Shown: piece after piece, positions 4,734 through 48,191 of the stretch
Numbering within the stretch: the stretch's first letter is position 1
How the letters are laid out: each line of letters begins with the position of its first letter
Origin: Monocercomonoides exilis PA203
Taxonomy: Eukaryota; Protista; Preaxostyla
Assembly (NCBI GenBank): GCA_001643675.2
Contig: LSRY02000028.1
Location: 1,054,001-1,118,000 of the forward strand
DNA length: 64,000 nt
Reading direction: 5' to 3'
Notes under the pieces: generated by a model
What the model was told of the DNA's origin: nothing
Databases searched by the model: none
What the model saw: the letters and a program-made list of their open reading frames with translations, nothing else
Program-made: the position numbers and the translations under genes

Positions 4734-7700
4734 TTAGTAATCAAGAGCGCAGAAGAGAGCAACAGAACGCTTGATCCAGTGAGATTCAACAGTGTCTGAA
4801 GGAATATCAAGTGAGATGACGTAGTTTGTTGAGTGCCCAGTTGTGGACAGTGTTCCTTGCCTTGTCAATATCTTGTAGATGGGGCAGTTGTATGACCCTT
4901 CTGTTGGTGGAACTCTGTTCTCCACTGGATTCAGATGGATGATAGGGAATGTTGTGTACAGCTCTTTCGGACGGGATTCAGTCAGAACATGTGCTTCGTG
5001 ATCCCATCTAGCTCCTTCCAAGAACAGTCCATACACAAGACATCCATCTGCTGGCCTTTCTGTAACTTCCTCAGGATTCTTGTAATCATCTCTTATGATT
5101 GCTTCAAATGATATCTTATCAATTGGAATTTTGTATTTCCGTGCAAAGTTCTGAAGGTTTCCGGTAAGAAAAGCTTGAGGGAAGAATAATCCAGAAATCC
5201 AATACACTGCTGGAGGTCCGTTTTCTATCCACTTCGCCAGGAACGCGCATCTCTGTGCAAGATCTTCCACCCACACAGACAAAGGCTTCAATGAAGGATA
5301 GGCAGGCTTTTCCCACAGTTTGGGTATTTGATTGATAAATAATGAATTAGACATGGCTTCAAGCTCTGCACTCATCACCACCTTTCCTGCAAGTGCCTTT
5401 ATCATATCATCCAGCGAAGTGTGGATAACTTTCAGAAGTCTGTTGTATCGAATGATTTCTTGCACGAGCACAGTGTTCATTGACTCTTCGTACAACGTTG
5501 GATATTTCTTTTGTGCCTCTTCTAAATTGAACATGTGTGGGACTTTCTCTCCAATAAACTCCACTTTCTCCTGAATGATTTCTTCTCTTGTCTGTCCAGA
5601 AGATCCGCTTGCTGTGCTTGGCTGAAGAGAAAGCAGATTATCAAATAAATCATTTGTATCCTTCATGGCACAGGTGATATCTGCATTCTCATGCAACCCA
5701 AAGACTTCGGGATATGCATTCAGATCATAGCTCTGAATCACTTGAATGTAGCCCTTCAAATCTTCGCAGTCGACAGATGTGTACTTTCCTGAAGGTGAGA
5801 AAGTGTATCCTTCTTGTAGCACATCTGGGCAAATGAATCTCTCGAGCAATGTTGAAAGCAGCCTTCTGTCCAAGAAATCAGTGACACGACCACCATAGTT
5901 GATTTCTCCAAACAGGAATGAAAGCACGCGATATGGTACTTCGATAGATGTCTCTAAGAACAGGCGCAGCTGTTTAATGCACACGTTCAGATCATCCACA
6001 GTGAATTCATATCTGATATTCCATCCCAATGCACCAAACTTTCTTCTCTCTTGAATGACTGCATGGAAGAAGGAAAGAGAGAATAGAAGCATTCTCAAAA
6101 CGCTTGGATCGTGTTGATCTCCCACAGGTGATATAACTGAAGGATCAAATGACTCGTATGTTCTCAGAAGATTTGCCTGAAGTCCCTTTGGTGGTTCATT
6201 TGTCATTTTGATACCTGACTGCAAGATCGACACCGGGAATTTCTCTGATGGCTGAGAAGTGAGCCACAGACGGAAGTCTCGATGAACAGATTCAGGTTTC
6301 CAGTTCTCCACAATACGTTCGAGCTCAGGCATCCACGAAGCATACAAATCGCAGTTTTGAAGAAGAACCCAGAAACCGTTTTCAGTTGCTTCATTAATGT
6401 ATTGCTCAGCTTTTACACCTTGTCCTTGCCCCAAAGAAAGAGAGTGGAGTTTCTTTGTCATCCTCATTTCAACTGCAAATTGATCGAGATCCTTTGCAGG
6501 GTTTGTACCAGGTGAGATGATGAAAATAAGAGGTCTCATTGAATTGGAGTCGCGATATGACTTAGCCAAGTTGAAGTTTGGAGGTTGCACATATTTCTTT
6601 CCAAAGTTCTCCTGTACAAAGTCTTGCACGCCTTCAGTGATCTTATCAGAACGCAAACATTTCAGCACAAGCAGTTTTTGGAACTGGTTCAGATCGTTCC
6701 ATCTGCCTGGGAGCGGCTCGCGATGCGCCTGTGAAGAGTCGAAGATCACTCGCCACGAATCTGGATCTGCAGCAAAGTCTTTGTCTAAGTCAGTAAATGC
6801 AGGAAGCTCTGCCAGTGCCTGTATGTCGATCCATGAACGTGACGTGAGCCAATCTTCTGCTGGATTTGGTTGAGGATTGGCAACAGTGGAACGACCGATA
6901 AGGAAACGATATTCTTGCTGGTCGATTTTGCCCTCATATGTCAAGATTCTCATGATCATCAAGAAGGAGAACATCAGCTTGTGCCTTGCAAACAGCGAAC
7001 GGCAGACATTCTGATACAGAAGATAAGTGAAGTTGTCCATCAGATTGTTCAAACGAGTGGCAAAGTCCTGCGATTGCTCTGTCTCCTCAATTGATTGCCT
7101 GTAAAGATCCATAAACCACTGCAGCGAATTCTGATACATAGGATCGATTGAAGACAGATCAGCAACACAGAAGAACAGAAGAGATCCTCTAACAGCCATT
7201 GGTCTGTATGTGTTTCTTGTTTCATCAATCTGCTGTTCAGTTTCTTCTGCTTCTTTAACCTTGACTTCAATGTCTGTACTCATCTTCTTTGATTCTGAAA
7301 GGGTATTAATAAGTGTCTCATCTTCCAATGGATTTGCTGTTTCGGACAATAGTTTCAAGATCTGATCCTCCAATTCCTTCAACTTAGCTCTCATCTTTGC
7401 GTTGCTTGACATCAGACTGTTCTTCGATTCTTCCAAATCTGGTCTCTCTTGTACAACAACAGTTGCAAGAAGCTGATCTTCCAATCCACTCTGTGTCACA
7501 GTGAAGTTGAGAAGTGTTACTTTAACACTTGTTTCTGGAGCGTATTTGGGATTAGGCAGTTTTGTTGTCATGTACAATTTGAAGTTGTTGTTGTAAGGCA
7601 GAAGTGTATCGCCAAGTTTCATCACCTCAGATCCCTTGTGCATAAAAGTAGATCTGGTAAGTACAGGCTCAAGTGCAGGATCGAGTTCTTCACCAACGCT

Positions 7701-35199: not shown

Positions 35200-38100
35200 A
35201 TGTATTTAAATTCTCGTAAAGTTGTTAAATCTCAAAATAAAGGATTTTTCATGAAATCAGATCTATCCCACGTTGAAATATCAAAAGAAAATGTAAATCT
35301 ACAGATTTTTTTTCCTTTGACGTTCTGATGCTTGTTAAGCTTCTTCTCAACGTTATTATTTGCGTTTTTATTATTTATTCTCAAATTGGCGTTGATGAAT
35401 TACCTACAGTTGTTTGTTACTTTGAAAAATTTGATATTTTCATTTCGCAATTTTGTTTTATAAGGGCTCATGCCTGTTTATTGCGCAAGACCTAACGCCT
35501 GGTAATCCGACTTTTTCATTTGTAAATCAGGTTTTTGCCAGACATGACATGACGCTTGATTTATATCCAGTTTCACTTCATGAGTTTGCAATTTTTCAAT
35601 AAATTTTTATGAAAAAATCAGTTAATCTCTTTTTTCATTCCAAACTTTTATTCAGGCTCGATGCATTATTGCAGCATTATGCTTCGGGAATATTTCCATT
35701 TGACAGTGTTGTGATTGATGGAGGACTTTTATCATTGCCTTCTCACCTCTATTCTCAACTCGCCCCATTGGTCCAGCAGAACAGCATTCCAGTCATTTCA
35801 CTCGGAGTGAACCCTGCTAATGTACAACATTTCCTTCCGTTGAAATTGTCTGAAAGAAGAGATCAGAAAGGATCCGCAAGCGTTTTCTTTGATGAAAGCA
35901 TAATAGAAGATTTGATTTGTCCTCCAAAGCGCATATCAACTTCAAATGGGGAAAATGCATCAGAGGATGCTTTTTGTTCGTTGCGTAGAGATAAAACTCG
36001 CGAGAAAGAAAATTGTGTTTTGATGAGTGGAATAGAAGAGTTCTGGCCTTCGGTGCTTTCTACAAGCGGAATAAATGAAAATGCACATGTGCTGCCATAT
36101 GCACATTTCATTTGTATGACCCCTTTATTTCTTTATCTTTTTTTCGTTATCGTCATCATAATTGAAATTATTAATTCTTTTATTTGTTTGGAAATGCCTT
36201 TCATCATATTTAATAATGTTTCATCCACTTGACAAATGAAATCTTCAGATAAAACAAACGTAGCACCAACTTCTCTTTCCAACGAACCAATTGCTGCAGC
36301 GCTTGTTGTTCATCGCCAGCCTCTCTTCCCTTTGTCCTCATCTTCACCTTCCTCTCATTCTGCATATCAACCTTCAAACTCTGATCCCTTTCTGATTGAA
36401 GAAGTGTGTATGTTCTATTCGCCTTCTGATGAGCCGTCGCTGGCGGAGTGGCAAGCGATGTCTGTGGCTGAGCGGTGGATGCTGGGAAGGATGAAGAACA
36501 GCCCAAGAGTTATGGCAAAAGTGGGGCAGCGCAATGAAATGTGGAAGGAGATGCAGAAGATGATTGTGGAGAAGATGTCAGCTGAAAGCGGACACAGTGG
36601 AGGAGCTGGTGGAAGCAATGGAATTGCAGAGGAATTTGAATTTGAAGGTGTGCAGGAAATTGAGAATACAAGAAGAATTAATATTTTATTTGGAATATTT
36701 ACCAAAGAAACCAAATTAGAGTTTATATCTTTTATTATTTAACAAGAATCATTTCTTTTCATCTTTATCTCTTTTATATTATTTTTTCCCCCTCATTGTA
36801 ATTCCTTAATCCCCCAGCGCTTCCATTCCCCCCACCCCCAGTTCCAATCCCCTTCTCTCTCCAGTCACGCTCTGTCCTTCTTGTCGATCTCCTTCTCCCG
36901 CAACACCGCTCATCCAGCACATCCCTCTCTCTTCTGAAGGACATCCTGGAAGGGCTGCGGAGGCAGTCATTTGAAGTCGAGATGGTCGATGGATGGGGGC
37001 TGAGTGCAGGCGACATCGAAGACGCTGTTGTCTCGCCGTTTGTTGCCTCGTTTGGGAATGCTGGGCTGACTCCGCTGGCTGAAGAGGTGGCTGTGACTGC
37101 AATTGTGCTCATCAAAGACACGGTGTGTGTATATGTATGTGTGTGCATGTGAATATGTATGTGTTAGTATTGTAGAAGGAGGAAGATATTTGGGAATTTG
37201 GAGGGAGATGGAAGATTGCTGTGAGTGATTGAGAACATCAATATGAATATTTTATAATTGTTATTTGCATTCAATTAATGTTATTCCAATGAATATATTT
37301 ATCATTTCCTTTGCAGAGCACAGCTGAAATGCCTGAAGTGATAGAGAAAGAAGAAGAGCTGAAGATGATGTGCGCCTTTCACGGCATCAAACTAGTCATC
37401 TTCGACACAGAATGTGAGGGAAACAAGGAAGATCCTCAAATGTCTTCTTCTTCTTCTTCCTCTTCTTCTTCTTCATTTCCTCCTCTTTCTGATAGCGACC
37501 TCGTCGACTTCATCCAATCTGCCTCATCTTCCTCTTCGTCTTCTCTTCAGAAGCAGCCAGATCTCCCTCACACTCTCTTCCCACTCACTCTGCTGCCATC
37601 CACAGCTGCCTTAGGCACATCCCTCGAAGCATCTCTTTTTGTGCACATTCCAATTTCTACTATTCAATCTCTTTCTCCAAATAAAACTCCTTCTTCTTCC
37701 TCTTCTCCTTCTCATTCTTCTGCTTCTTCTTCTCCATCATCCTCTGAATCCCTCCCTCTTTTCCCCACCTTCTTCTCTTCTCCTCCTTTCGTCTCGTCTG
37801 TCTCATGCACTCTTCCTTCCTCTTTCATCACTGACGCTGTTGAAGCACAAAAAAGAGGAGAAAAACCTTCTTTCAACTTGGAAACAGCCGCATTTCCTGT
37901 TCCTCTTGTTCTTGTGCCTCATTCACACCCTCCTCCTTCTTCCTCTTCTTCCTCTTCTTCTTCTCGCTATCGATCATCCAAGTCATCCAACCAACCACAA
38001 TCCACTCCTTATCTCCACTTCGATGCAGACAGCGACGTCTTTCGTGTTCAGTCTGCTGTCACGTTGGAGTCTCCTTTTGTCCTTCGTGTTGGCATCTCCT

Positions 38101-38827
38101 CTTCTGTCGCTGGTGTCTTTGCTCCTTCTCAACTGCCTCCTCCTCCTTCTCCTCCTTCTCCTTCAAAATCTTCTTCAAAATCTTCTTCTTCTCCCCCTCC
38201 TCCTCCCATCCTCTTCACCTCCTCCTCCCTCCCCACACCCATCTCCTTCCATTCCCTTTGGATTCACTGGCTCAGCAACGATATTTCCAGCCTTTCTCTT
38301 TCAATTCCTCCGCACCCATCTTCTTTTTCTGAAGTTTCTCCGACAAAATTCCCCGCTCCGGCGCCTTTGATGTCTTCTCCCTTCTCTCAGAAAGGAATCG
38401 TCTTCAAAAAGGGCTCTGATAAATCAACCTCTTCTTCTTCTTCTTCCTCTTCCTCTTCTTCCTCTCCTCCCATTCAATCACCCTTTTCTCCTCCTCCCTC
38501 ATTCATCCAACAGCCTTCTTTCCCTCAGCCTCAGCTGATGTGTGTGGGAGGGTTTGTCTTTGATCCTCTGCCAATTCTTCCCTTTTCAATAACAGTTGGC
38601 AATCTTACTCGTCCTCCTCCGCCTGATGGAAGAGAAGAAGGAGAAAGAGAAAGAGAAGGAGAAGAAGATAGCTATGCTGAATGGAGTGAGAGGCAGGAGA
38701 GGATTAATGAAAGAGAAAGAGAAGGAGAAAGAAACAAGAAGAAGAGAGGAGAAAGAGGAGAAAGAGAAGAAGAAGAGAACAAAACAGATTATTATTTGCA
38801 TCCACCTTCTTCTGAAGGAAAACCACC

Positions 38828-38862
<35 letters not shown>

Positions 38863-40219
38863 ACAATCAGCATATTCGTCATCCTTCTCCATCATCATCA
38901 TCAACAACAACAGAAGGAAGAGAAGAAGGAAGAGTAAAGACAATGACCCAATCGTCGATGCAGCCAAGTGTGTGGAATAAGAACGAAGAGCTGCCCATTC
39001 AGCTGTACAACATCTATTCCCTTTCTGCTCCTCCTCCTTCTTCTCCCTTTGTGTCCTTCAAATACATCGGGATGTTCATTCACCATCCTTCGCTTCCTCC
39101 TTCGTTTTATTCTGACTCATCTTCTCCTTCACCTTCATCTTCATCTTCATCTTCATATTCTTCTTCTTCTTCTTCTCTTCCCTTTTCTGAACTGTATCCT
39201 TCCACTCCTCTTCCTTCACCTGATCTCAAACAAACAATTCTTCTCTCTTTTGCTTCTTCTCTGCTGCTTCGCCCAATGCTGGCTGTTGATTCCTTTTCAC
39301 TCGACCCTTCTTCTTCTTCTCCCTCCTCCTCCTCTTCTTCTCTTTCTACTCTATCTTTATCATTTGATGCCTCTTCTTCTCCATCTTCTCCTTCTCCTTC
39401 TTCTTCCTCTTCTCTTTCTCTTTCTCCTTCTTCTCTTTCATCCCTCAGCTATTTTTCACCTGATGTGTCTGAATTGCTTCTCTCTTCTTCTCTTTTCACT
39501 CATTCTCTCTTTGCACCCAATGGCTTCATTGATGAAACACTCCCAAATCTTCCTCTTTTCAACTGGAATGCAAGAAACTTGGAGAAAAGAAGAGGAATTG
39601 CGAAGAAGGAGGAAGGTAATAGAGAAGAAGAAGAAGAAGACGAAAAATTTAATGATGGGATGAATAAACAGAAGAAGAGGATGATTAATATGAGATTGCA
39701 TAACCAAAGAGCATCATTTGATTATTTTCCTTCTTCTTCTTCTTCTCATTCATCATCATCTTCTTCTCCACTATTTCTGAAGAGGAGAGAAAGAGAAAGA
39801 GAAAGAGAAAGAGAGCAAAAGAGAGAGAAGGCAAATGCAACGCCTTTGTCTTCTGAATTTGTTGTCCATCCAACAGCGCCTCTTTCTCCTTCCTCTTCAT
39901 CTGACATCAGACGCATCGAAAATGACAGATTTGACACTCTTGTTGGCTCTCCTTCTCCTCCTCCTCCTCATCCTTCTTCTTCTTCCTTTTCTTCAAAACA
40001 TTCTTCTTCTTCTCCTTCACCTCCATCATCATCATCATCTTCTTCTTCTCCTTCGTCATCTTCTTCTCTTCTTCCTCCAAAAAGCATTCCAGTTGAGCAG
40101 AAGGCATTTGACCCAATTTTGGAGCAGATCAACCAGCACAGAAAACAAACAGGGCAACCTCCTCTTTCTTCTCTTCCTGTTTATTCTGCTAATGATCAAT
40201 CATTCACTCCTCCTTCTCC

Positions 40220-40258
<39 letters not shown>

Positions 40259-42617
40259 TTCTTCTTCTTCTTCTTCTCCTTCTCCTTCTTCTTCTGATGT
40301 TCCATTTGAGCTGAATGACTTTGCCAAACTTGCCTTCTCTTTCTCTTCTTCTGATTCTTCTCCTTTTCTCGACGGTGCTGCTGCTCAGCTGTCTCTTTTA
40401 GCTTCTTCTTCTTCTCCTTCCTCTTCTCATTCTTCTTCTTCTTCTTCTTCTTCTTTTTATCCTTCTTCTTCTTCCTCTTCTTCTCCATTCTCTTATTCTG
40501 TTCCTTCTCCTTTCGATGCACTCACGTTCACTCATCGCTCTTCTTTTATTTCTCCATTCGATCTTCTTTCTTCTTCTTCTTCTTCTCCTTCTCCTTCTTC
40601 TCATAAAACTCCTCCTCCTTCCTCTCCTTCTTCTTCTTCTTCTTTGGAATCTTCTTTCTTCTTTGACGATGAATTGGGTGATACTTTCATATCTCTCTAC
40701 AATTTAATAGCATCTTCTATATCTTCTTCTCCTTCTTCTTCCTCTTCTTCTTCCTCTTCCTCCTCCTCTTCCTCTTTCCCCCCTCTTTCTCTTCCTTCTT
40801 CTTCTGTCAGATTTCTTGTCGATTCCATCACCAATCCAAATGCTGACTATTCATTCCTCACAATGCTCTCTTCCTCTTTCCCTTTCCCTTTCCCTTCTTC
40901 TCCTTCCTCTTCTTCTTTCCCCTTCTCTTTCTCTTCTCTTCCTCTCTTCTCCTCCTTCCACTCTTCTCTTCGCCTTCTCCATCGCTCCATCGAATCTGCC
41001 GCTCAAAATTCCTCAACTCGCCCGCCGGCAAAGCCGCTTGCACCGTTTTCAGATGAAAGTTGTGTGAAAATGATGATTGAAGAGCTGAAGGAAGAGAGGA
41101 GGGAGAGAGAGGCAGAGGAAAGAGTGAAAGAAAGGGAGAAAGATAAAGAAGAAGAAGAAGATTTAATTGAAGAAGAAGATGATTATGATGATTTTGATGA
41201 TGATGAGTATGAAGATGATAAAAGAAGATATCCATCAGGCAATGCATCGACTCACAAGACATATTATTCTGCTCTCAGAAATGAGGGAAGGAAAACTCGT
41301 TCAACTTTCACATCAACAACAACATCATCATCTTCTTCTTCTTTTCCCACTCCTTTATCTTCATCTCCAACAACATCAACATCATCATCTTCCTCTTCTT
41401 CTCTTCCTCTTCTCTCCAACGAAGAGCTTCTTCAGAAGACGCTCAAGAAAATAGCAAGACAATCTTCTGTTTCTGCTGCCTCACTCAACAAAATGGGGCA
41501 GCAGCAGACGCCTTCCAAAAGATCGTATTATTCTTCTTATACACCTCCTTCTCATTCTTCTTCTCCTTCTTCTCCTTCTTCCTTATCTCCAACTTCTTAT
41601 CCATCACGTGCATCTAAACAGGCTCAACAGAAGAGCCGAAATCCTTCTTCTTCTTCTTCTTCTTCTTCTTCTTCTTCTTCTTCTGCTTATCCTTCTTCTT
41701 CTTATCCCTCTTCTGCTTATCCATCATCACGTGCATATCCACCTTCTCTCTCAAAACCTCAGCCAATTCCCACTCGAAGCAAGTCCACTCAACAGCAGCC
41801 ATCTCAGCACTCATCCACTCGCTCTGCATCAACACAGCCATCTGCTTCTTCTTCTTCTTCTTCTTCTTATCCTTCTCCTTCTTCTGCTCAAAGTTATGCT
41901 TCTTCCTCTCGTCTTTCTCCTTATTCCCCTCCATCTCCTCCATCTTCTCCTCCATCCTCATCTTCATCAACATCAGCATCATCTTCTTCTTCGTCTCGTT
42001 CTCTTCCTCCGCCACAGCCACTTCAGCCAGGCGAAAAGCCTCAGTTTTCTTCGGCTGCCTTCCAAAGAATGTTTTCTTCTCCTTCTCCTTCGCCTTCTTC
42101 ACCTTCACCTCCATCATCGTTTTCTTCATCCTCTTCTTCAATCACTTCATCATCTGATTTGGAGGCACTCAGAAAGAGACAGGCTGAGCTGATGAGACAG
42201 TTGGCAGATGCAGACGGAGCAGGCACTCGCAGCACATTCCCTTCATCTTCTGCATCATCATCGTCTTCTTCTTCATCTTCTTCATCTGCCAATCCAACAT
42301 ATCCACCACAGACATCAATGAGCACTGAAGAAATGCTGAAGCGGCTGAGCGAGATGAAGAGGCAGATTGCAGCTAAGGAGGCAGAAGGAAAAGAAGCAGA
42401 AACAGCTTTCAGAACTGATCGTGCTACTCAATATCAAACAGATAAATATGAACATTCCACTTCATTGGAAAAGAAAACACAACAGGAACTAAATAAAGTC
42501 AAAGGAGGAAAATCATCTACAAAACCGACAACCAGATCAGGTTCACCTTTTGAATCTTTATTTTTGTCAACTGTAATCTCGAGAGAGGGTATTGATATTG
42601 TTGTATCATTTGAATAA
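35200..42617 (+). CDS. Large hypothetical Ser/Pro-rich protein, multi-exon, with an N-terminal hydrophobic segment
   Basis: ORFs 35609-36232, 36236-36742 and 37311-42617 can be joined by GT-AG introns. An early exon encodes LLLNVIICVFIIYSQI (possible anchor). The remainder is poly-Ser encoded by (TCT/TCA)n, interspersed with short globular-looking blocks. No family recognised and exon boundaries are uncertain. Confidence 0.55.
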
Positions 42618-43302: not shown

Positions 43303-43310
43303 TATAAATA
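43303..43310 (+). promoter_or_regulatory. TATA box (TATAAATA) about 30 nt upstream of the structured GC-rich island
   Basis: Canonical TATA sequence at snRNA-promoter-like spacing from position 43337. The AT-rich background makes a chance match possible. Confidence 0.4.
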
Positions 43311-43336
43311 TGATAATGATCAAAAAATAATTTTAT

Positions 43337-43569
43337 GGACCGTGCAAAGCTCTCTGCTTCGTAAGAGGCAGAATAGTTTTCACTGCTGTGGAGCACTCGA
43401 AAATGGTGTACAGTCCTGGCAAACTGTCCGAGAAAAAGCCTGTAAAAGGTTGTTTTTCGTGAATTTCGAGTTCTGATTAACTCCTTTTGCACTGCGAATG
43501 CAGATTCCAGCTCGTTGACGAGAGGCTATGCCTCCGTTACGTTGGGGACTAACCCTGCATTTTACAGCT
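43337..43569 (+). ncRNA. Candidate structured non-coding RNA of about 230 nt (identity unresolved; contains the telomere-template-like CTAACCCT)
   Basis: About 47% GC against 14-20% in the immediate flanks (manual count). Several stems whose G-U pairs work only on the plus strand, including TCTGCTTC-GTAA-GAGGCAGA with a GNRA loop. No convincing ORF. Confidence 0.6.
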
Positions 43570-44914: not shown

Positions 44915-46483
44915 TTAGCACAACGGAATGAAGGTGTCAGACAGCGTTTTTTGAAACCATGGCTTCTCAACTCGACTTAATGCGTGCATCACAACAGAAA
45001 ACCCGCGAGCTTTGTTGCAGACCGCAATAACAACATGATCTGGCAGCTGAGAAAAATAGGCGTGCTGCTGTTTTCCATTGTAAAAATAGGCGCACAATTT
45101 CTTGTGCATGTCAATTTCCAGAGTGACAGCCATTCCCTTCTGAATAGGGTCGTTGTCGGCCACATGCTGCCCATTGCGCACCCACACGTTTCCATACAAG
45201 TTCACATGGCCTCCTTTCACATTGTCTACCCACTGATTTCGCGGAAGGCTAATCGCTTCTGAGGATGCAATCCCAATCCCGTAATCTGCGCCACTTCCGT
45301 GAACACTCAGCGTGCAGTGCCAAATTCCCTCTTTGATCACCATCGTGCTCAAAAGAGTCCAAACACCCGCTGAATTCCATGTGACCCTTGTATCGTTCCA
45401 ATCACTTGTCAGATGCACATCAACTGAGCGTACATCCCACGGCTTTGTTACTTCAATTTCTTCACATATTTCTTTAACTTTTTCTTTTTCCTTTTCTTTT
45501 CCTTTTTCAGAATCATCAGCTTTTTTGGATATTTCTTTTGAGTTTTCAGTTTTCTCAATGCTTGGACGAGTCGATGAAGAAGCAGGCTCATAATCATCAA
45601 CTCTTGGTTCAGGAGAACAAGCTCTGCATTCTTCAGCATCGGGCTTTTTCTCGTTCATGTTTATCGCAAAAGAACCAGAAGATCTGCTAGGATGAGTTAT
45701 ATTTGAATCAAGTTTGAAATTTATTTGATCCAAAAGCGCGTTTGCAGTTTTGCTCACGGCTATGGATGGATCCGCGCAAAGTGTTTTCACAAGTTGTTTG
45801 ATCTGATCCAAATTGACAAAAGTTGCTCCATTAGACACAAGCGTGCACAAAAGATCCATCATCGTTGCTTTAACTTCAACTGGAGCTGGCCTTAGACCGC
45901 TGCTGCTGCTGGCTGGGCAGGTCAATAAATTATATTCTTCACAATAACATGACGGAATATTTCCCAAAATTATTGTAACTGAACGAAATATCTCCAACGA
46001 GCATATGGCTCTTGTAACATGAGGGATAGTTTCTGCCAATATTTTGAGTCCTCGAAAGCCAGCTATCATATGAGAAGATAATTTTGTCTTAATGTAACAA
46101 GTTTGATCATTAAAAATGTTTTTGTAAAATGATAAAGCGATTTTTCTTTAATAAAAAATGCTTCACACTTTTATAAGTTCCTCGAAAGTGTTTATCAATT
46201 CCTTCATTTGACTCATTAATTCATTTGCGTTTTCGACTTGATCAATGCTCTTTTCATCGAAGGCATGTTTTATAATATTCAATGTTTTTGGCTCCGCATT
46301 TTTCGTTAACTCCATTGCGAATTTCATAAATGCGCCAAATTGCAATTCTTTAGACATTTCGTTTGAGTTGCTATCTTTTTTCGCTTCTATTAATAAATTT
46401 TATCAATGAAATCGTTTTCATAAAACAAACAAATTTCATTCAAAGAATTCAATATTCAAACCATCTCCAACATTGAAAGACAT
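44915..46483 (-). CDS. Protein with a helical (ARM/HEAT-like) N-terminus and C-terminal SPRY/B30.2-like domain
   Basis: The C-terminus TMVIKEGIWHCTLSVHGSGADYGIGIASSE...GMAVTLEIDMHKKLCAYFYNGKQQHAYFSQLPDHVVIAV has the SPRY beta-sandwich pattern. Upstream exons at about 46170-46386 and ATG at 46483. Confidence 0.7.
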
Positions 46484-46652
46484 CTGTTCAAGTGGAAGAT
46501 TTGTGGAAAACTCAAAAAAATAAAATGGGCGCTAAAAAAATATGATCATCTTCAACACAACTTGTTTCGGCCCATATTAAAAATTATAAATTTAATAACT
46601 AAAAGCAAAATTAAACATATTGGACCAATTCCAGATTGAAATACATAGAACT

Positions 46653-48191
46653 ATGGACAGTGAGTTTTTTACTGGTTCTAATTTGTTGCTATCCTTTTTT
46701 AATAAATTTTATGTTGCTATTTCGTTTTATTTAGAAACTTTGGCTAATATTGCAGAAAAAACTACTGCTGAAAAACTCAAGCTGTTGGAAGAATCAAAAG
46801 TTGAAATAGAAATTGCTTCTTTTCATTGTTTACTGAGATCACTCAACGGAACAATATGCAATTCACTTGTTGGGATTTTACAGGATCCTCTAGCAGATCA
46901 AAAGCTTAAACAACAATGCTTGGATGTAATCTTCTTACTTGGATTGAGAGGATTTTTTGGGGTTTATATTGATTTTAAAAATCCATTTTTTGATCGATTC
47001 GATGAAGCTGGATTAAGTGTTGCACTTTTGGATATACTAAAAAATTCAGTTGCTGATAATTCATCGACTGTATACCGTCTCGCTGGATTCTGTATGCTTC
47101 ATTTGAATAAGGTTAGAATATTCGATGAAATCAATGCTCCATCAATTTTGAAGTTTATTCAGACCGAGTCATTATTTATGCAAAACAACAAGAATTACAA
47201 ATCTTTACTGAGCTTAATTATTGGAATTCAATGCATTATGGAAGAACCCTTTAGTTACCCTTTTTTTGAAAGCGCTGAAATGAAAACGATTATGAATCAG
47301 TTAGTATCACAATATTTTATTTTTCTAAAAGAAGAAAAAGGATTTTGGAGAAATATCATAATTTCAGAGCTTCAGGTCATCTTTTCGATTATGATGCCAG
47401 AAGAAATAGTTTGCCAGGATAAAAAGAATCAACATTTTGATACATGCGCTGAGATTATTGAAGAAGAATTGGAGTATATGAAAATAAATTCATCTGTAAT
47501 TCAAAGTTCCGAAGGAATTATTGCAAAAGAAGAAAAAGAGCATTTTAAAGATGACAAAACAGAATGGAAAATTAAGAATGAAGCTGCTTTACAAATAACA
47601 ACAGCTATAGATGAAGACGATAATTTCGACGTTAGGAGTCCTTTCATTGATATCCTCAGAGCAGAGAGACAGAAAGGCTGGATCATTCGATCAGTCTTTG
47701 ATGGACTGTGGAGCCTCATCTTCAAGCAAAATGAACTCAGAACGCTTCTGATGGAACACGAAAAAATGTGGTCATTTATGGAATTTTTTACGGGCAATGC
47801 TTTTAATGGTGCGTTGCTGCGTCCAATATCATATATTATTATGTGGTATATTTTAGAGAGAATGGAAGCGAAAGATTTTTGTCCCGTGACAGATAAGCCC
47901 TTTCATTTGCTTCTGGAGATGATTTGCGGAAGATACAAAACAAACGGAATGGAGCGGAATCCGCATATGATCGAAGGCGTCTCCGTCACAATTGGTTCTC
48001 TGTTTGGTACATATACTACATATACTGAAAAGAATGAATATGATTTAAACGTTCGCAAAGTTCGTAAAGAATTGAAGGAAATGTTCGAAGAAGCAGGCGT
48101 TGAAGCCGAATTCGTTGCCTGTTTGCACATGAAATGGCATGCCATATCAATTCAAGTGGAAAAAACATTTTTGAAGCTTGGCAGGTTTTAG
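46653..48191 (+). CDS. Hypothetical helical-repeat-like protein
   Basis: About a 500-codon ORF with amphipathic helical character. ATG GAC A|GTGAGT...TTTAG defines a likely 75-nt intron at 46660-46734. Confidence 0.65.
   Translation: MDSEFFTGSNLLLSFFNKFYVAISFYLETLANIAEKTTAEKLKLLEESKVEIEIASFHCLLRSLNGTICNSLVGILQDPLADQKLKQQCLDVIFLLGLRGFFGVYIDFKNPFFDRFDEAGLSVALLDILKNSVADNSSTVYRLAGFCMLHLNKVRIFDEINAPSILKFIQTESLFMQNNKNYKSLLSLIIGIQCIMEEPFSYPFFESAEMKTIMNQLVSQYFIFLKEEKGFWRNIIISELQVIFSIMMPEEIVCQDKKNQHFDTCAEIIEEELEYMKINSSVIQSSEGIIAKEEKEHFKDDKTEWKIKNEAALQITTAIDEDDNFDVRSPFIDILRAERQKGWIIRSVFDGLWSLIFKQNELRTLLMEHEKMWSFMEFFTGNAFNGALLRPISYIIMWYILERMEAKDFCPVTDKPFHLLLEMICGRYKTNGMERNPHMIEGVSVTIGSLFGTYTTYTEKNEYDLNVRKVRKELKEMFEEAGVEAEFVACLHMKWHAISIQVEKTFLKLGRF

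Follow-up and report, generated by a model that had tools for sequence, protein, structure and literature searches.

We analysed a 64,000-nucleotide (nt) stretch of the Monocercomonoides exilis PA203 genome (contig LSRY02000028.1 of assembly GCA_001643675.2), referred to here as the window. Our subject is the segment at positions 43337-43569, on the plus strand. This is a genuine, previously unannotated gene for a non-coding RNA (ncRNA), and its product is an abundant, discrete and unspliced transcript. On balance, we favour the view that the RNA is a divergent U17/snR30-type H/ACA small nucleolar RNA (snoRNA) of M. exilis, corresponding to Rfam family SNORA73 (RF00045). An earlier note, made from the DNA letters of the window, had described the segment as an orphan structured RNA gene of the plus strand. 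That much is supported by expression, copy number and folding, as set out below. The note also raised the possibility of telomerase RNA with a permuted core, and listed U3 and RNase P/MRP RNA as alternatives. No H/ACA RNA was among these. A term search of two M. exilis genome papers found no mention of snoRNA, small nuclear RNA or telomerase RNA, and neither paper was found to annotate ncRNAs.

The gene body, of ~233 nt, was delimited by base composition and by RNA contigs, which together give its predicted ends. The GC fraction is 0.472 across 43337-43569, compared with 0.23 and 0.217 in the 300-nt flanks. Hence, the sharply bounded island of ~47% GC described previously is real. It occurs once in the 82.3-Mb M. 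exilis genome (101 contigs), at G000:C23:1097337-1097569, and so is not a high-copy repeat, which would have undermined its status as a gene. The sequence TATAAATA, noticed earlier about 30 nt upstream of the island, occupies 43303-43310 of the plus strand, 26 nt before 43337. It is putatively the TATA box of an independent ncRNA gene. Spacing is similar (~26-29 nt) at the genuine RNase MRP RNA gene of this organism, where TATAAAA is found 29 nt before the RNA start.

To assess expression, we used random-primed metatranscriptomes, in four runs that come from a single independent study; depths are mean k-mer depths. Contigs over the island span 43388-43555 (294x), 43322-43555 (249x), 43344-43558 (272x) and 43344-43511 (650x). 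All are 100% identical to the window, and no joints indicative of splicing were seen in the four runs. Depth in the flanks is 0, except for one 5.7x contig at 43555-43743. The RNA sequencing check suggested in the earlier note therefore reveals a discrete, unspliced and abundant RNA, at 249-650x compared with 0-6x on either side. Such depth is consistent with an abundant snoRNA. Note that these contigs give neither the strand nor the exact ends of the transcript; two begin 7 nt inside 43337, and those reaching furthest in the 3' direction stop at 43555-43558, which is 11-14 nt before 43569.

We examined the structure of the RNA by single-sequence thermodynamics only. The plus strand folds with a minimum free energy (MFE) of -79.5 kcal/mol (z = -3.65), and none of 200 shuffled sequences did as well. 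Folding of the minus strand was no better than chance (z = -1.47). The preference for the plus strand expressed previously is thus borne out, and is further favoured by the covariance model match described below. The sequence words picked out in the earlier note all occur where it places them, give or take 1-2 nt, and every helix it listed is fully complementary. These comprise UCUGCUUC/GAGGCAGA (8/8, with a GUAA loop), GCACU/GGUGU (5/5), ACAGU/ACUGU (5/5), UGG/CCG (3/3), GAGUU/AACUC (5/5), CUCG/CGAG (4/4), GAGGC/GCCUC (5/5), UUCCAGC/GUUGGGG (7/7, including 3 G-U pairs), GAAUUU/AGAUUC (6/6) and the long-range CUGUAAAA/UUUUACAG pairing (8/8). Complementary helices need not form, and the last is an example. 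Its complementarity stands, but its ensemble pair probability is ~0, because CUGUAAAAGG either pairs locally with CCUUUUGCA (43483-43491) or sits in the loop of an alternative hairpin at 43429-43459.

When the whole window was searched at Rfam gathering thresholds, no family was found. At permissive thresholds (E<=10, 4,227 families), SNORA73 was the sole family to register on the RNA, with 17.2 bits. The match is to the plus strand, at 43461-43569, with an E-value of 0.035 when 401 nt were searched and 0.022 for 256 nt, both corrected for 4,227 families. The last position of the model aligns to 43569, the island boundary. Hence, the comparison with Rfam proposed in the earlier note gives a weak match to SNORA73 and, at E<=10, nothing for telomerase, U3, RNase P/MRP or SRP. 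No other H/ACA family was found on the RNA at the same threshold.

The aligned region includes an H/ACA-type hairpin at 43497-43561 of the plus strand, within the final 73 nt of the island, corresponding to the conserved 3' hairpin of SNORA73. It consists of a basal stem, an internal loop and an upper stem. The basal stem, AAUGCAG (43497-503) with CUGCAUU (43555-61), has 7/7 Watson-Crick pairs and a pair probability of 0.54-0.63. The upper stem, at 43513-43541, is an irregular helix of 12 base pairs (bp) with a UAU loop. By itself, the hairpin folds with -23.6 kcal/mol. Directly after the 5' strand of the basal stem, the SNORA73 alignment places an m1-like element, AGAUUCCAG, at 43502-43510. 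This is identical to the family consensus, AUAUUCCUA, at 6/9 positions and retains the AUUCC core. Note that m1 varies in T. brucei, C. elegans and Tetrahymena. On the opposite side of the loop is the octamer CUAACCCU (43549-43556, plus strand), within which UAACCCU (43550-43556) occupies the place of m2. It matches the m2 consensus, AAACCAU, at 5/7 positions, so departs from it, while keeping the AACC core. The A to C substitution in m2 is compensated, within the basal stem of the RNA itself, by a U to G change in m1.

Spacing at the 3' end agrees with the family. UAACCCU is followed by GCAUUUU, which is 7 nt, and then ACA (43564-66). In U17/snR30 RNAs, the m1/m2 element is invariantly seven nucleotides upstream of ACA, and shortening the interval by 2 nt abolishes function (Fayet-Lebaron et al., PMC2664660). 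Read from the sequence, the 3' end comprises the 7-bp basal stem, 2 nt, ACA and a 3-nt tail, GCU, up to the end of the island. The segment 43564-43569 of the plus strand is thus the predicted mature 3' end, while the RNA contigs stop at 43555-58. From the top of the loop, after UCC/GGA, to ACA is 15 nt, and the rule for H/ACA RNAs is 14-16 nt (PMC7601244). Canonical pseudouridylation-guide geometry is absent from the 3' hairpin; formation of UCC/GGA leaves too short a 5' strand.

The remainder of the RNA can be arranged in the same framework. At 43336-43430 of the plus strand is what would be a 5' variable domain. This contains hairpin A (43342-43383, GUAA loop), found in both the MFE and centroid structures, and a second stem region at 43389-43427. 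A possible closing helix, UGGAC (43336-40) with GUCCG (43426-30), is suggested by 5/5 complementarity. Directly after the domain is AGAAAA (43431-43436, plus strand), a candidate box H and one of just two ANANNA sites in the RNA. Next is an internal hairpin, at 43441-43491 of the plus strand, where UGUAAAAGG/CCUUUUGCA closes GAGUU/AACUC and neighbouring pairs. This hairpin is present in the free MFE structure and in a fold constrained to the H/ACA arrangement. The constrained fold lies 4 kcal/mol above the MFE, and another 1.4 is needed to keep m1 and m2 unpaired.

We then considered the 18S ribosomal RNA (rRNA), where m1 and m2 would have their partner sites, rm1 and rm2. Ribosomal DNA was located using a 530-loop word, found in 25 copies; a 5'-end primer word gave three loci that are not ribosomal DNA. 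Most of the 25 copies are subtelomeric, within ~10-45 kb of contig ends. One 18S rRNA is at L035:4091-~7000 (G000:C6:1840090 onward). The 18S rRNA of the organism, examined in two extracted loci (L009 and L035), retains canonical rm1 (UGGAAUAAU) and rm2 (UUGGUUU, L035 ~5563). Between them, in expansion segment 6 (ES6), is a 159-nt AU-rich insertion (L035 ~5410-5560). The insertion folds as a self-contained domain of three hairpins, closed by AAUAAAAU/GUUUUAUU right beside rm1 and rm2. Complementarity between m1 and rm1 (L035 ~5400) consists of AUUCCA/UGGAAU (6 bp) and GCU/AGC across a 1-nt bulge, with -10.1 kcal/mol. Only 1.05% of 2,000 shuffles gave a duplex as good, and this one ranks 35th among 2,989 segments tiled along the 18S rRNA. 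In the canonical register, m2 and rm2 form 4 Watson-Crick pairs (AACC/GGUU), compared with the 5-6 bp expected. This reduction arises because m2 deviates while rm2 is unchanged. When the RNA was compared with 10 kb of pre-rRNA in helix and duplex scans, the only helices found were rich in G-U pairs.

Several observations weigh against assignment of the RNA to U17/snR30, and some of them favour a different explanation: that this structured ncRNA belongs to some other class, or to one not yet known (a lineage-specific H/ACA-like or orphan nuclear RNA, for instance), and that its likeness to SNORA73 is due to chance or to generic hairpin-ACA geometry. We regard this as a serious possibility, albeit not the one we prefer. 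The SNORA73 score of 17.2 bits is far below the gathering threshold of 74, and a chance match of such size is expected about once or twice per genome (a score of 15.8 bits has E = 4.3). None of the 14 species tabulated in PMC7601244 departs from AAACCAU, and the motif is constant in every species described, Tetrahymena and T. brucei among them. The best m2/rm2 duplex has -6.3 kcal/mol, is rich in G-U pairs and is not above chance, since 12.6% of shuffles do as well. Similarly, the best 18S duplex of the 3' loop strand is no better than shuffles (22/60 as good). Some of the m1 bases have GUUGGGG as a possible partner within the RNA (probability 0.15-0.55). The closing helix of the 5' domain has an ensemble probability of only ~0.05, and the candidate box H competes with a hairpin, CGAGAAA/UUUUUCG (43429-43459), that has a probability of ~0.7. 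The H box and the mature 3' end are predictions, and RNA contigs, ending at 43555-43558, take in neither the ACA box nor the whole CUGCAUU strand of the basal stem. On the other hand, the chance of any Rfam family scoring so well on an independently defined, expressed RNA of 233 nt is ~2-3%. In addition, there are family-specific features that were not used in finding the match, namely the 7-nt interval between m2 and ACA, the m1/rm1 complementarity (p~0.01) and the coincidence of the alignment end with the island boundary. A generic H/ACA RNA also fits poorly with a loop that has no canonical guide geometry and with the failure of every other H/ACA family to register. Turning to the alternatives put forward in the earlier note, the case for RNase MRP or RNase P RNA consists of a P4-like complementarity of six bases (AGUCCU, 43412-17, with GGGACU, 43544-49) and a 5' end that may loosely resemble human MRP RNA. 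Neither an RNase_MRP nor an RNaseP model matches at E<=10, CR-I and CR-V are absent from the island RNA, and the canonical MRP RNA of M. exilis is encoded elsewhere, at G000:C11:710531-710826. We therefore reject the MRP identity and give RNase P or MRP RNA almost no credence. A divergent U3 snoRNA fares as badly. Although GACCGUGC and GGCAGAAU loosely resemble boxes A' and A, UGAUGA is absent and the single CUGA (43473) is internal, far from the 3' end. Without C/D boxes, and with no U3 family match at E<=10, the RNA is not credible as U3.

The telomerase proposal deserves separate scrutiny. It holds that CUAACCCU (43549-56) is a template, with UUCCAGC/GUUGGGG as the boundary helix. A U-rich, pseudoknot-like region would lie 5' of the template, and CUGUAAAA/UUUUACAG would close the ring, making the RNA a naturally occurring circular permutant. 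The factual premises of the proposal are sound. The octamer, CTAACCCT in the DNA, is at 43549-43556; M. exilis telomeres are (TTAGGG)n, as the earlier note had assumed; and CUAACCCU is complementary to more than one such repeat. No other telomere-type octamer occurs on either strand of the window (128 kb in total), we estimate a chance of ~2% for one in an RNA of like size and composition, and the octamer is preceded, at a distance of 1 nt, by a 7-bp helix. Moreover, no metamonad telomerase RNA is mentioned in a 2025 review. The structure argues otherwise. At -69.2 kcal/mol, the permuted model is less stable than the MFE structure by 10.3 kcal/mol and than the H/ACA model by 6.3. The ring-closing helix has the ensemble probability of ~0 noted above, and we found no supported pseudoknot in the island RNA. 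The last two template bases are inside the 7-bp basal stem (probability ~0.6), and the 13 nt that follow the template leave no room for a 3' core element. Telomerase models of Rfam do not register at E<=10, and a depth of 250-650x is high for telomerase RNA outside ciliates. The telomeres themselves provide another test. At no fewer than 143 sites, across dozens of contig ends, they contain a fixed variant of two-repeat length, CCCTAG-TTTGAA on the C strand and TTCAAA-CTAGGG on the G strand (examples in L029-L034 include C1:2709693-2711169 and C2:1928679). The variant is probably written by read-through of the telomerase RNA. If telomerase does write CCCTAG-TTTGAA, as this test assumes, the island RNA could not be copied to give it; CUAGUUUGAA would be needed beside the template, where the RNA has GUUGGGGA. 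Conversely, the read-through product predicted from the island locus is absent from the genome. The permuted telomerase RNA thus goes unsupported, and we consider it improbable. One version is compatible with the preferred hairpin. Here, the RNA would be a metamonad telomerase RNA of an unprecedented kind, scaffolded by dyskerin. Its template, CUAACCCU, would be in the terminal hairpin, of H/ACA type, within the internal loop and 3' of all other core elements. Such an RNA would possibly have evolved from, or double as, a U17/snR30-like snoRNA. We view this as a long shot. Like vertebrate telomerase RNA and others, the island RNA has an 8-nt stretch complementary to TTAGGG and preceded by a helix, and it shares a hairpin-ACA ending with the 3' domain of the vertebrate RNA. 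To our knowledge, the template of all telomerase RNAs is 5' of the pseudoknot and outside the H/ACA hairpin. In contrast, the octamer here is part of the final hairpin, where it spans loop and basal stem and is followed by 13 nt. The simpler explanation is that the telomere-like octamer is the m2-equivalent of a U17/snR30-type 3' hairpin.

These observations have a practical consequence for the search for telomerase RNA. An RNA island cannot be called a telomerase RNA on the strength of a telomere-like octamer, which in the present case coincides with what would be an rRNA-docking motif. For the true telomerase RNA, which is expected to contain CUAGUUUGAACCCUAA, the telomere variant offers a precise probe; outside telomeric arrays, the sequence to look for is CTAGTTTGAACCCTAA. 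A genome-wide search for a non-telomeric copy of the variant complement (BCCCTAGTTTGAACCCTAA, with a 5' flank filter) gave 0 hits, which is uninformative.

Returning to U17/snR30, we searched for other genes of this type and for orthologues. A genome-wide SNORA73 scan, in which 29 of 1,723 candidates were scored, did not return the island locus itself. Being non-exhaustive, it leaves room for a better U17 elsewhere, and this too counts against the assignment. A locus at C7:647824-647981 scored 15.8 bits against SNORA73 (E = 4.3). It has 43-50% GC, does not form an island and gave no match at E<=1 in a local scan, so was dismissed as noise. The canonical U17 3'-hairpin pattern (ATTCC..AAACCAT-7 nt-ACA) has 12 matches in the M. 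exilis genome, and none scored on SNORA73; eight loci were scanned, comprising one representative of a 5-copy repeat and the other seven. No U17 with a canonical m2 came to light in this way, a point in favour of the assignment. The repeat is a dispersed family (L016-L020; five sites of G000:C5, from 342638 to 1030168) whose members are false positives of the pattern. They have in common a near-identical CT-rich 47-mer, ATTCCTCC...CCCAAACCATTCGCTTCACA. One metagenome match (L028, CETH01082657.1) was considered as an orthologue and rejected, since nothing aligns outside the pattern, as expected of a chance match. Neither the metagenome scan nor synteny yielded an orthologue. Hence, the U17/snR30 assignment is without covariation evidence, a further point against it.

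Synteny could not be used to find orthologues because the neighbouring genes are lineage-specific. Two convergent genes flank the ncRNA gene, each with its 3' end towards it. The flanking open reading frames (ORFs) are at 37311-42617 (plus strand), 44915-46069 (minus) and 46620-48191 (plus). An ORF of 384 amino acids is part of the downstream neighbour, MONOS_1189 (470 amino acids), for which a search of 5.8 billion proteins returned only the protein itself. For the 1768-amino acid ORF, the sole match was sub-threshold, to Saf4/Yju2. Neighbours other than MONOS_1189 contain no informative domains.

The MRP RNA gene mentioned above offers a useful comparison. It is at C11:710531-710826 (L015:1501-1796, plus strand) and matches RF00030 with 31.3 bits (E 8.6e-6 genome-wide). 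The RNA has CR-I (GGGGAAAGUCC) and CR-V (ACGGGGCUUAC), the TATAAAA sequence is 29 nt upstream, and a T5 terminator is just past the 3' end. Like the island, it is an unannotated, TATA-preceded ncRNA gene, GC-richer than the AT-rich DNA around it. The island RNA has neither CR-I/CR-V nor such a terminator, and its internal T5 run (43453-57) is spanned by RNA contigs and so transcribed through. Read-through of this run argues against RNA polymerase III. Taken together with the MRP RNA gene, which ends at T5, we infer that the island gene is probably transcribed by RNA polymerase II. With regard to the 3' boundary of transcription, two runs share an end point at 43555. The low-depth 5.7x contig (43555-43743, one run) starts exactly there, at the end of a high-depth contig. 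The shared end point may be a processing site, 3'-end heterogeneity or an artefact of the de Bruijn graph.

If the island RNA is the counterpart of U17/snR30, its role can be sketched by analogy with the established yeast and human systems. A TATA-driven, independent gene would produce an abundant box H/ACA-type snoRNA of ~233 nt. Its layout would be a variable 5' domain of two stems, the candidate H box AGAAAA, a small internal hairpin and the conserved 3' hairpin, the ACA box being placed 3 nt before the terminus. The protein partners would be Cbf5/dyskerin, Nop10, Nhp2 and Gar1. Rather than directing pseudouridylation, the RNA would dock on ES6 of nascent 18S rRNA, using two strands at the base of the internal loop in the 3' hairpin: AUUCCA(GCU) of m1 with UGGAAU of rm1, and AACC of m2 with GGUU of rm2. 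Docking would hold ES6 in an alternative fold and so allow the early cleavages that release 18S rRNA.

U17 RNAs from organisms other than yeast are 203-240 nt long and comprise a pair of 5' stems, then an H box, and then an internal and a 3' hairpin (PMC7601244). At 233 nt, the island RNA is in the same length class, and it has a multi-hairpin 5' part together with a 3' hairpin on a 7-bp basal stem. The small internal hairpin of human U17 (PMC7601244) is in the place occupied here by 43441-43491. Other likenesses are the two motifs flanking the base of the internal loop (AUUCC in the 5' strand, AACC in the 3' strand), the 7-nt interval between m2 and ACA, ACA 3 nt from the predicted end, complementarity of m1 and rm1, and abundance. 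There are also differences. The m2 sequence is UAACCCU, with no compensating change in rm2. Pairing of m1 has a one-base shift and gains GCU/AGC, and some of m1 is able to pair inside the hairpin. Finally, rm1 and rm2 are ~30 nt apart in yeast, compared with 159 nt in M. exilis 18S rRNA.

The review of snR30/U17 cited above (PMC7601244) lists no metamonad homologue. If our assignment is correct, the range of the one essential, non-modifying H/ACA snoRNA would come to include an amitochondriate lineage that is deeply divergent. A further consequence would be that the 'invariant' m2 element can drift without a compensating change in 18S rRNA. In that case, docking would lean on an extended m1/rm1 helix across the 159-nt ES6 insertion, and M. 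exilis would provide a natural experiment for the chaperoning of ES6 by snR30.

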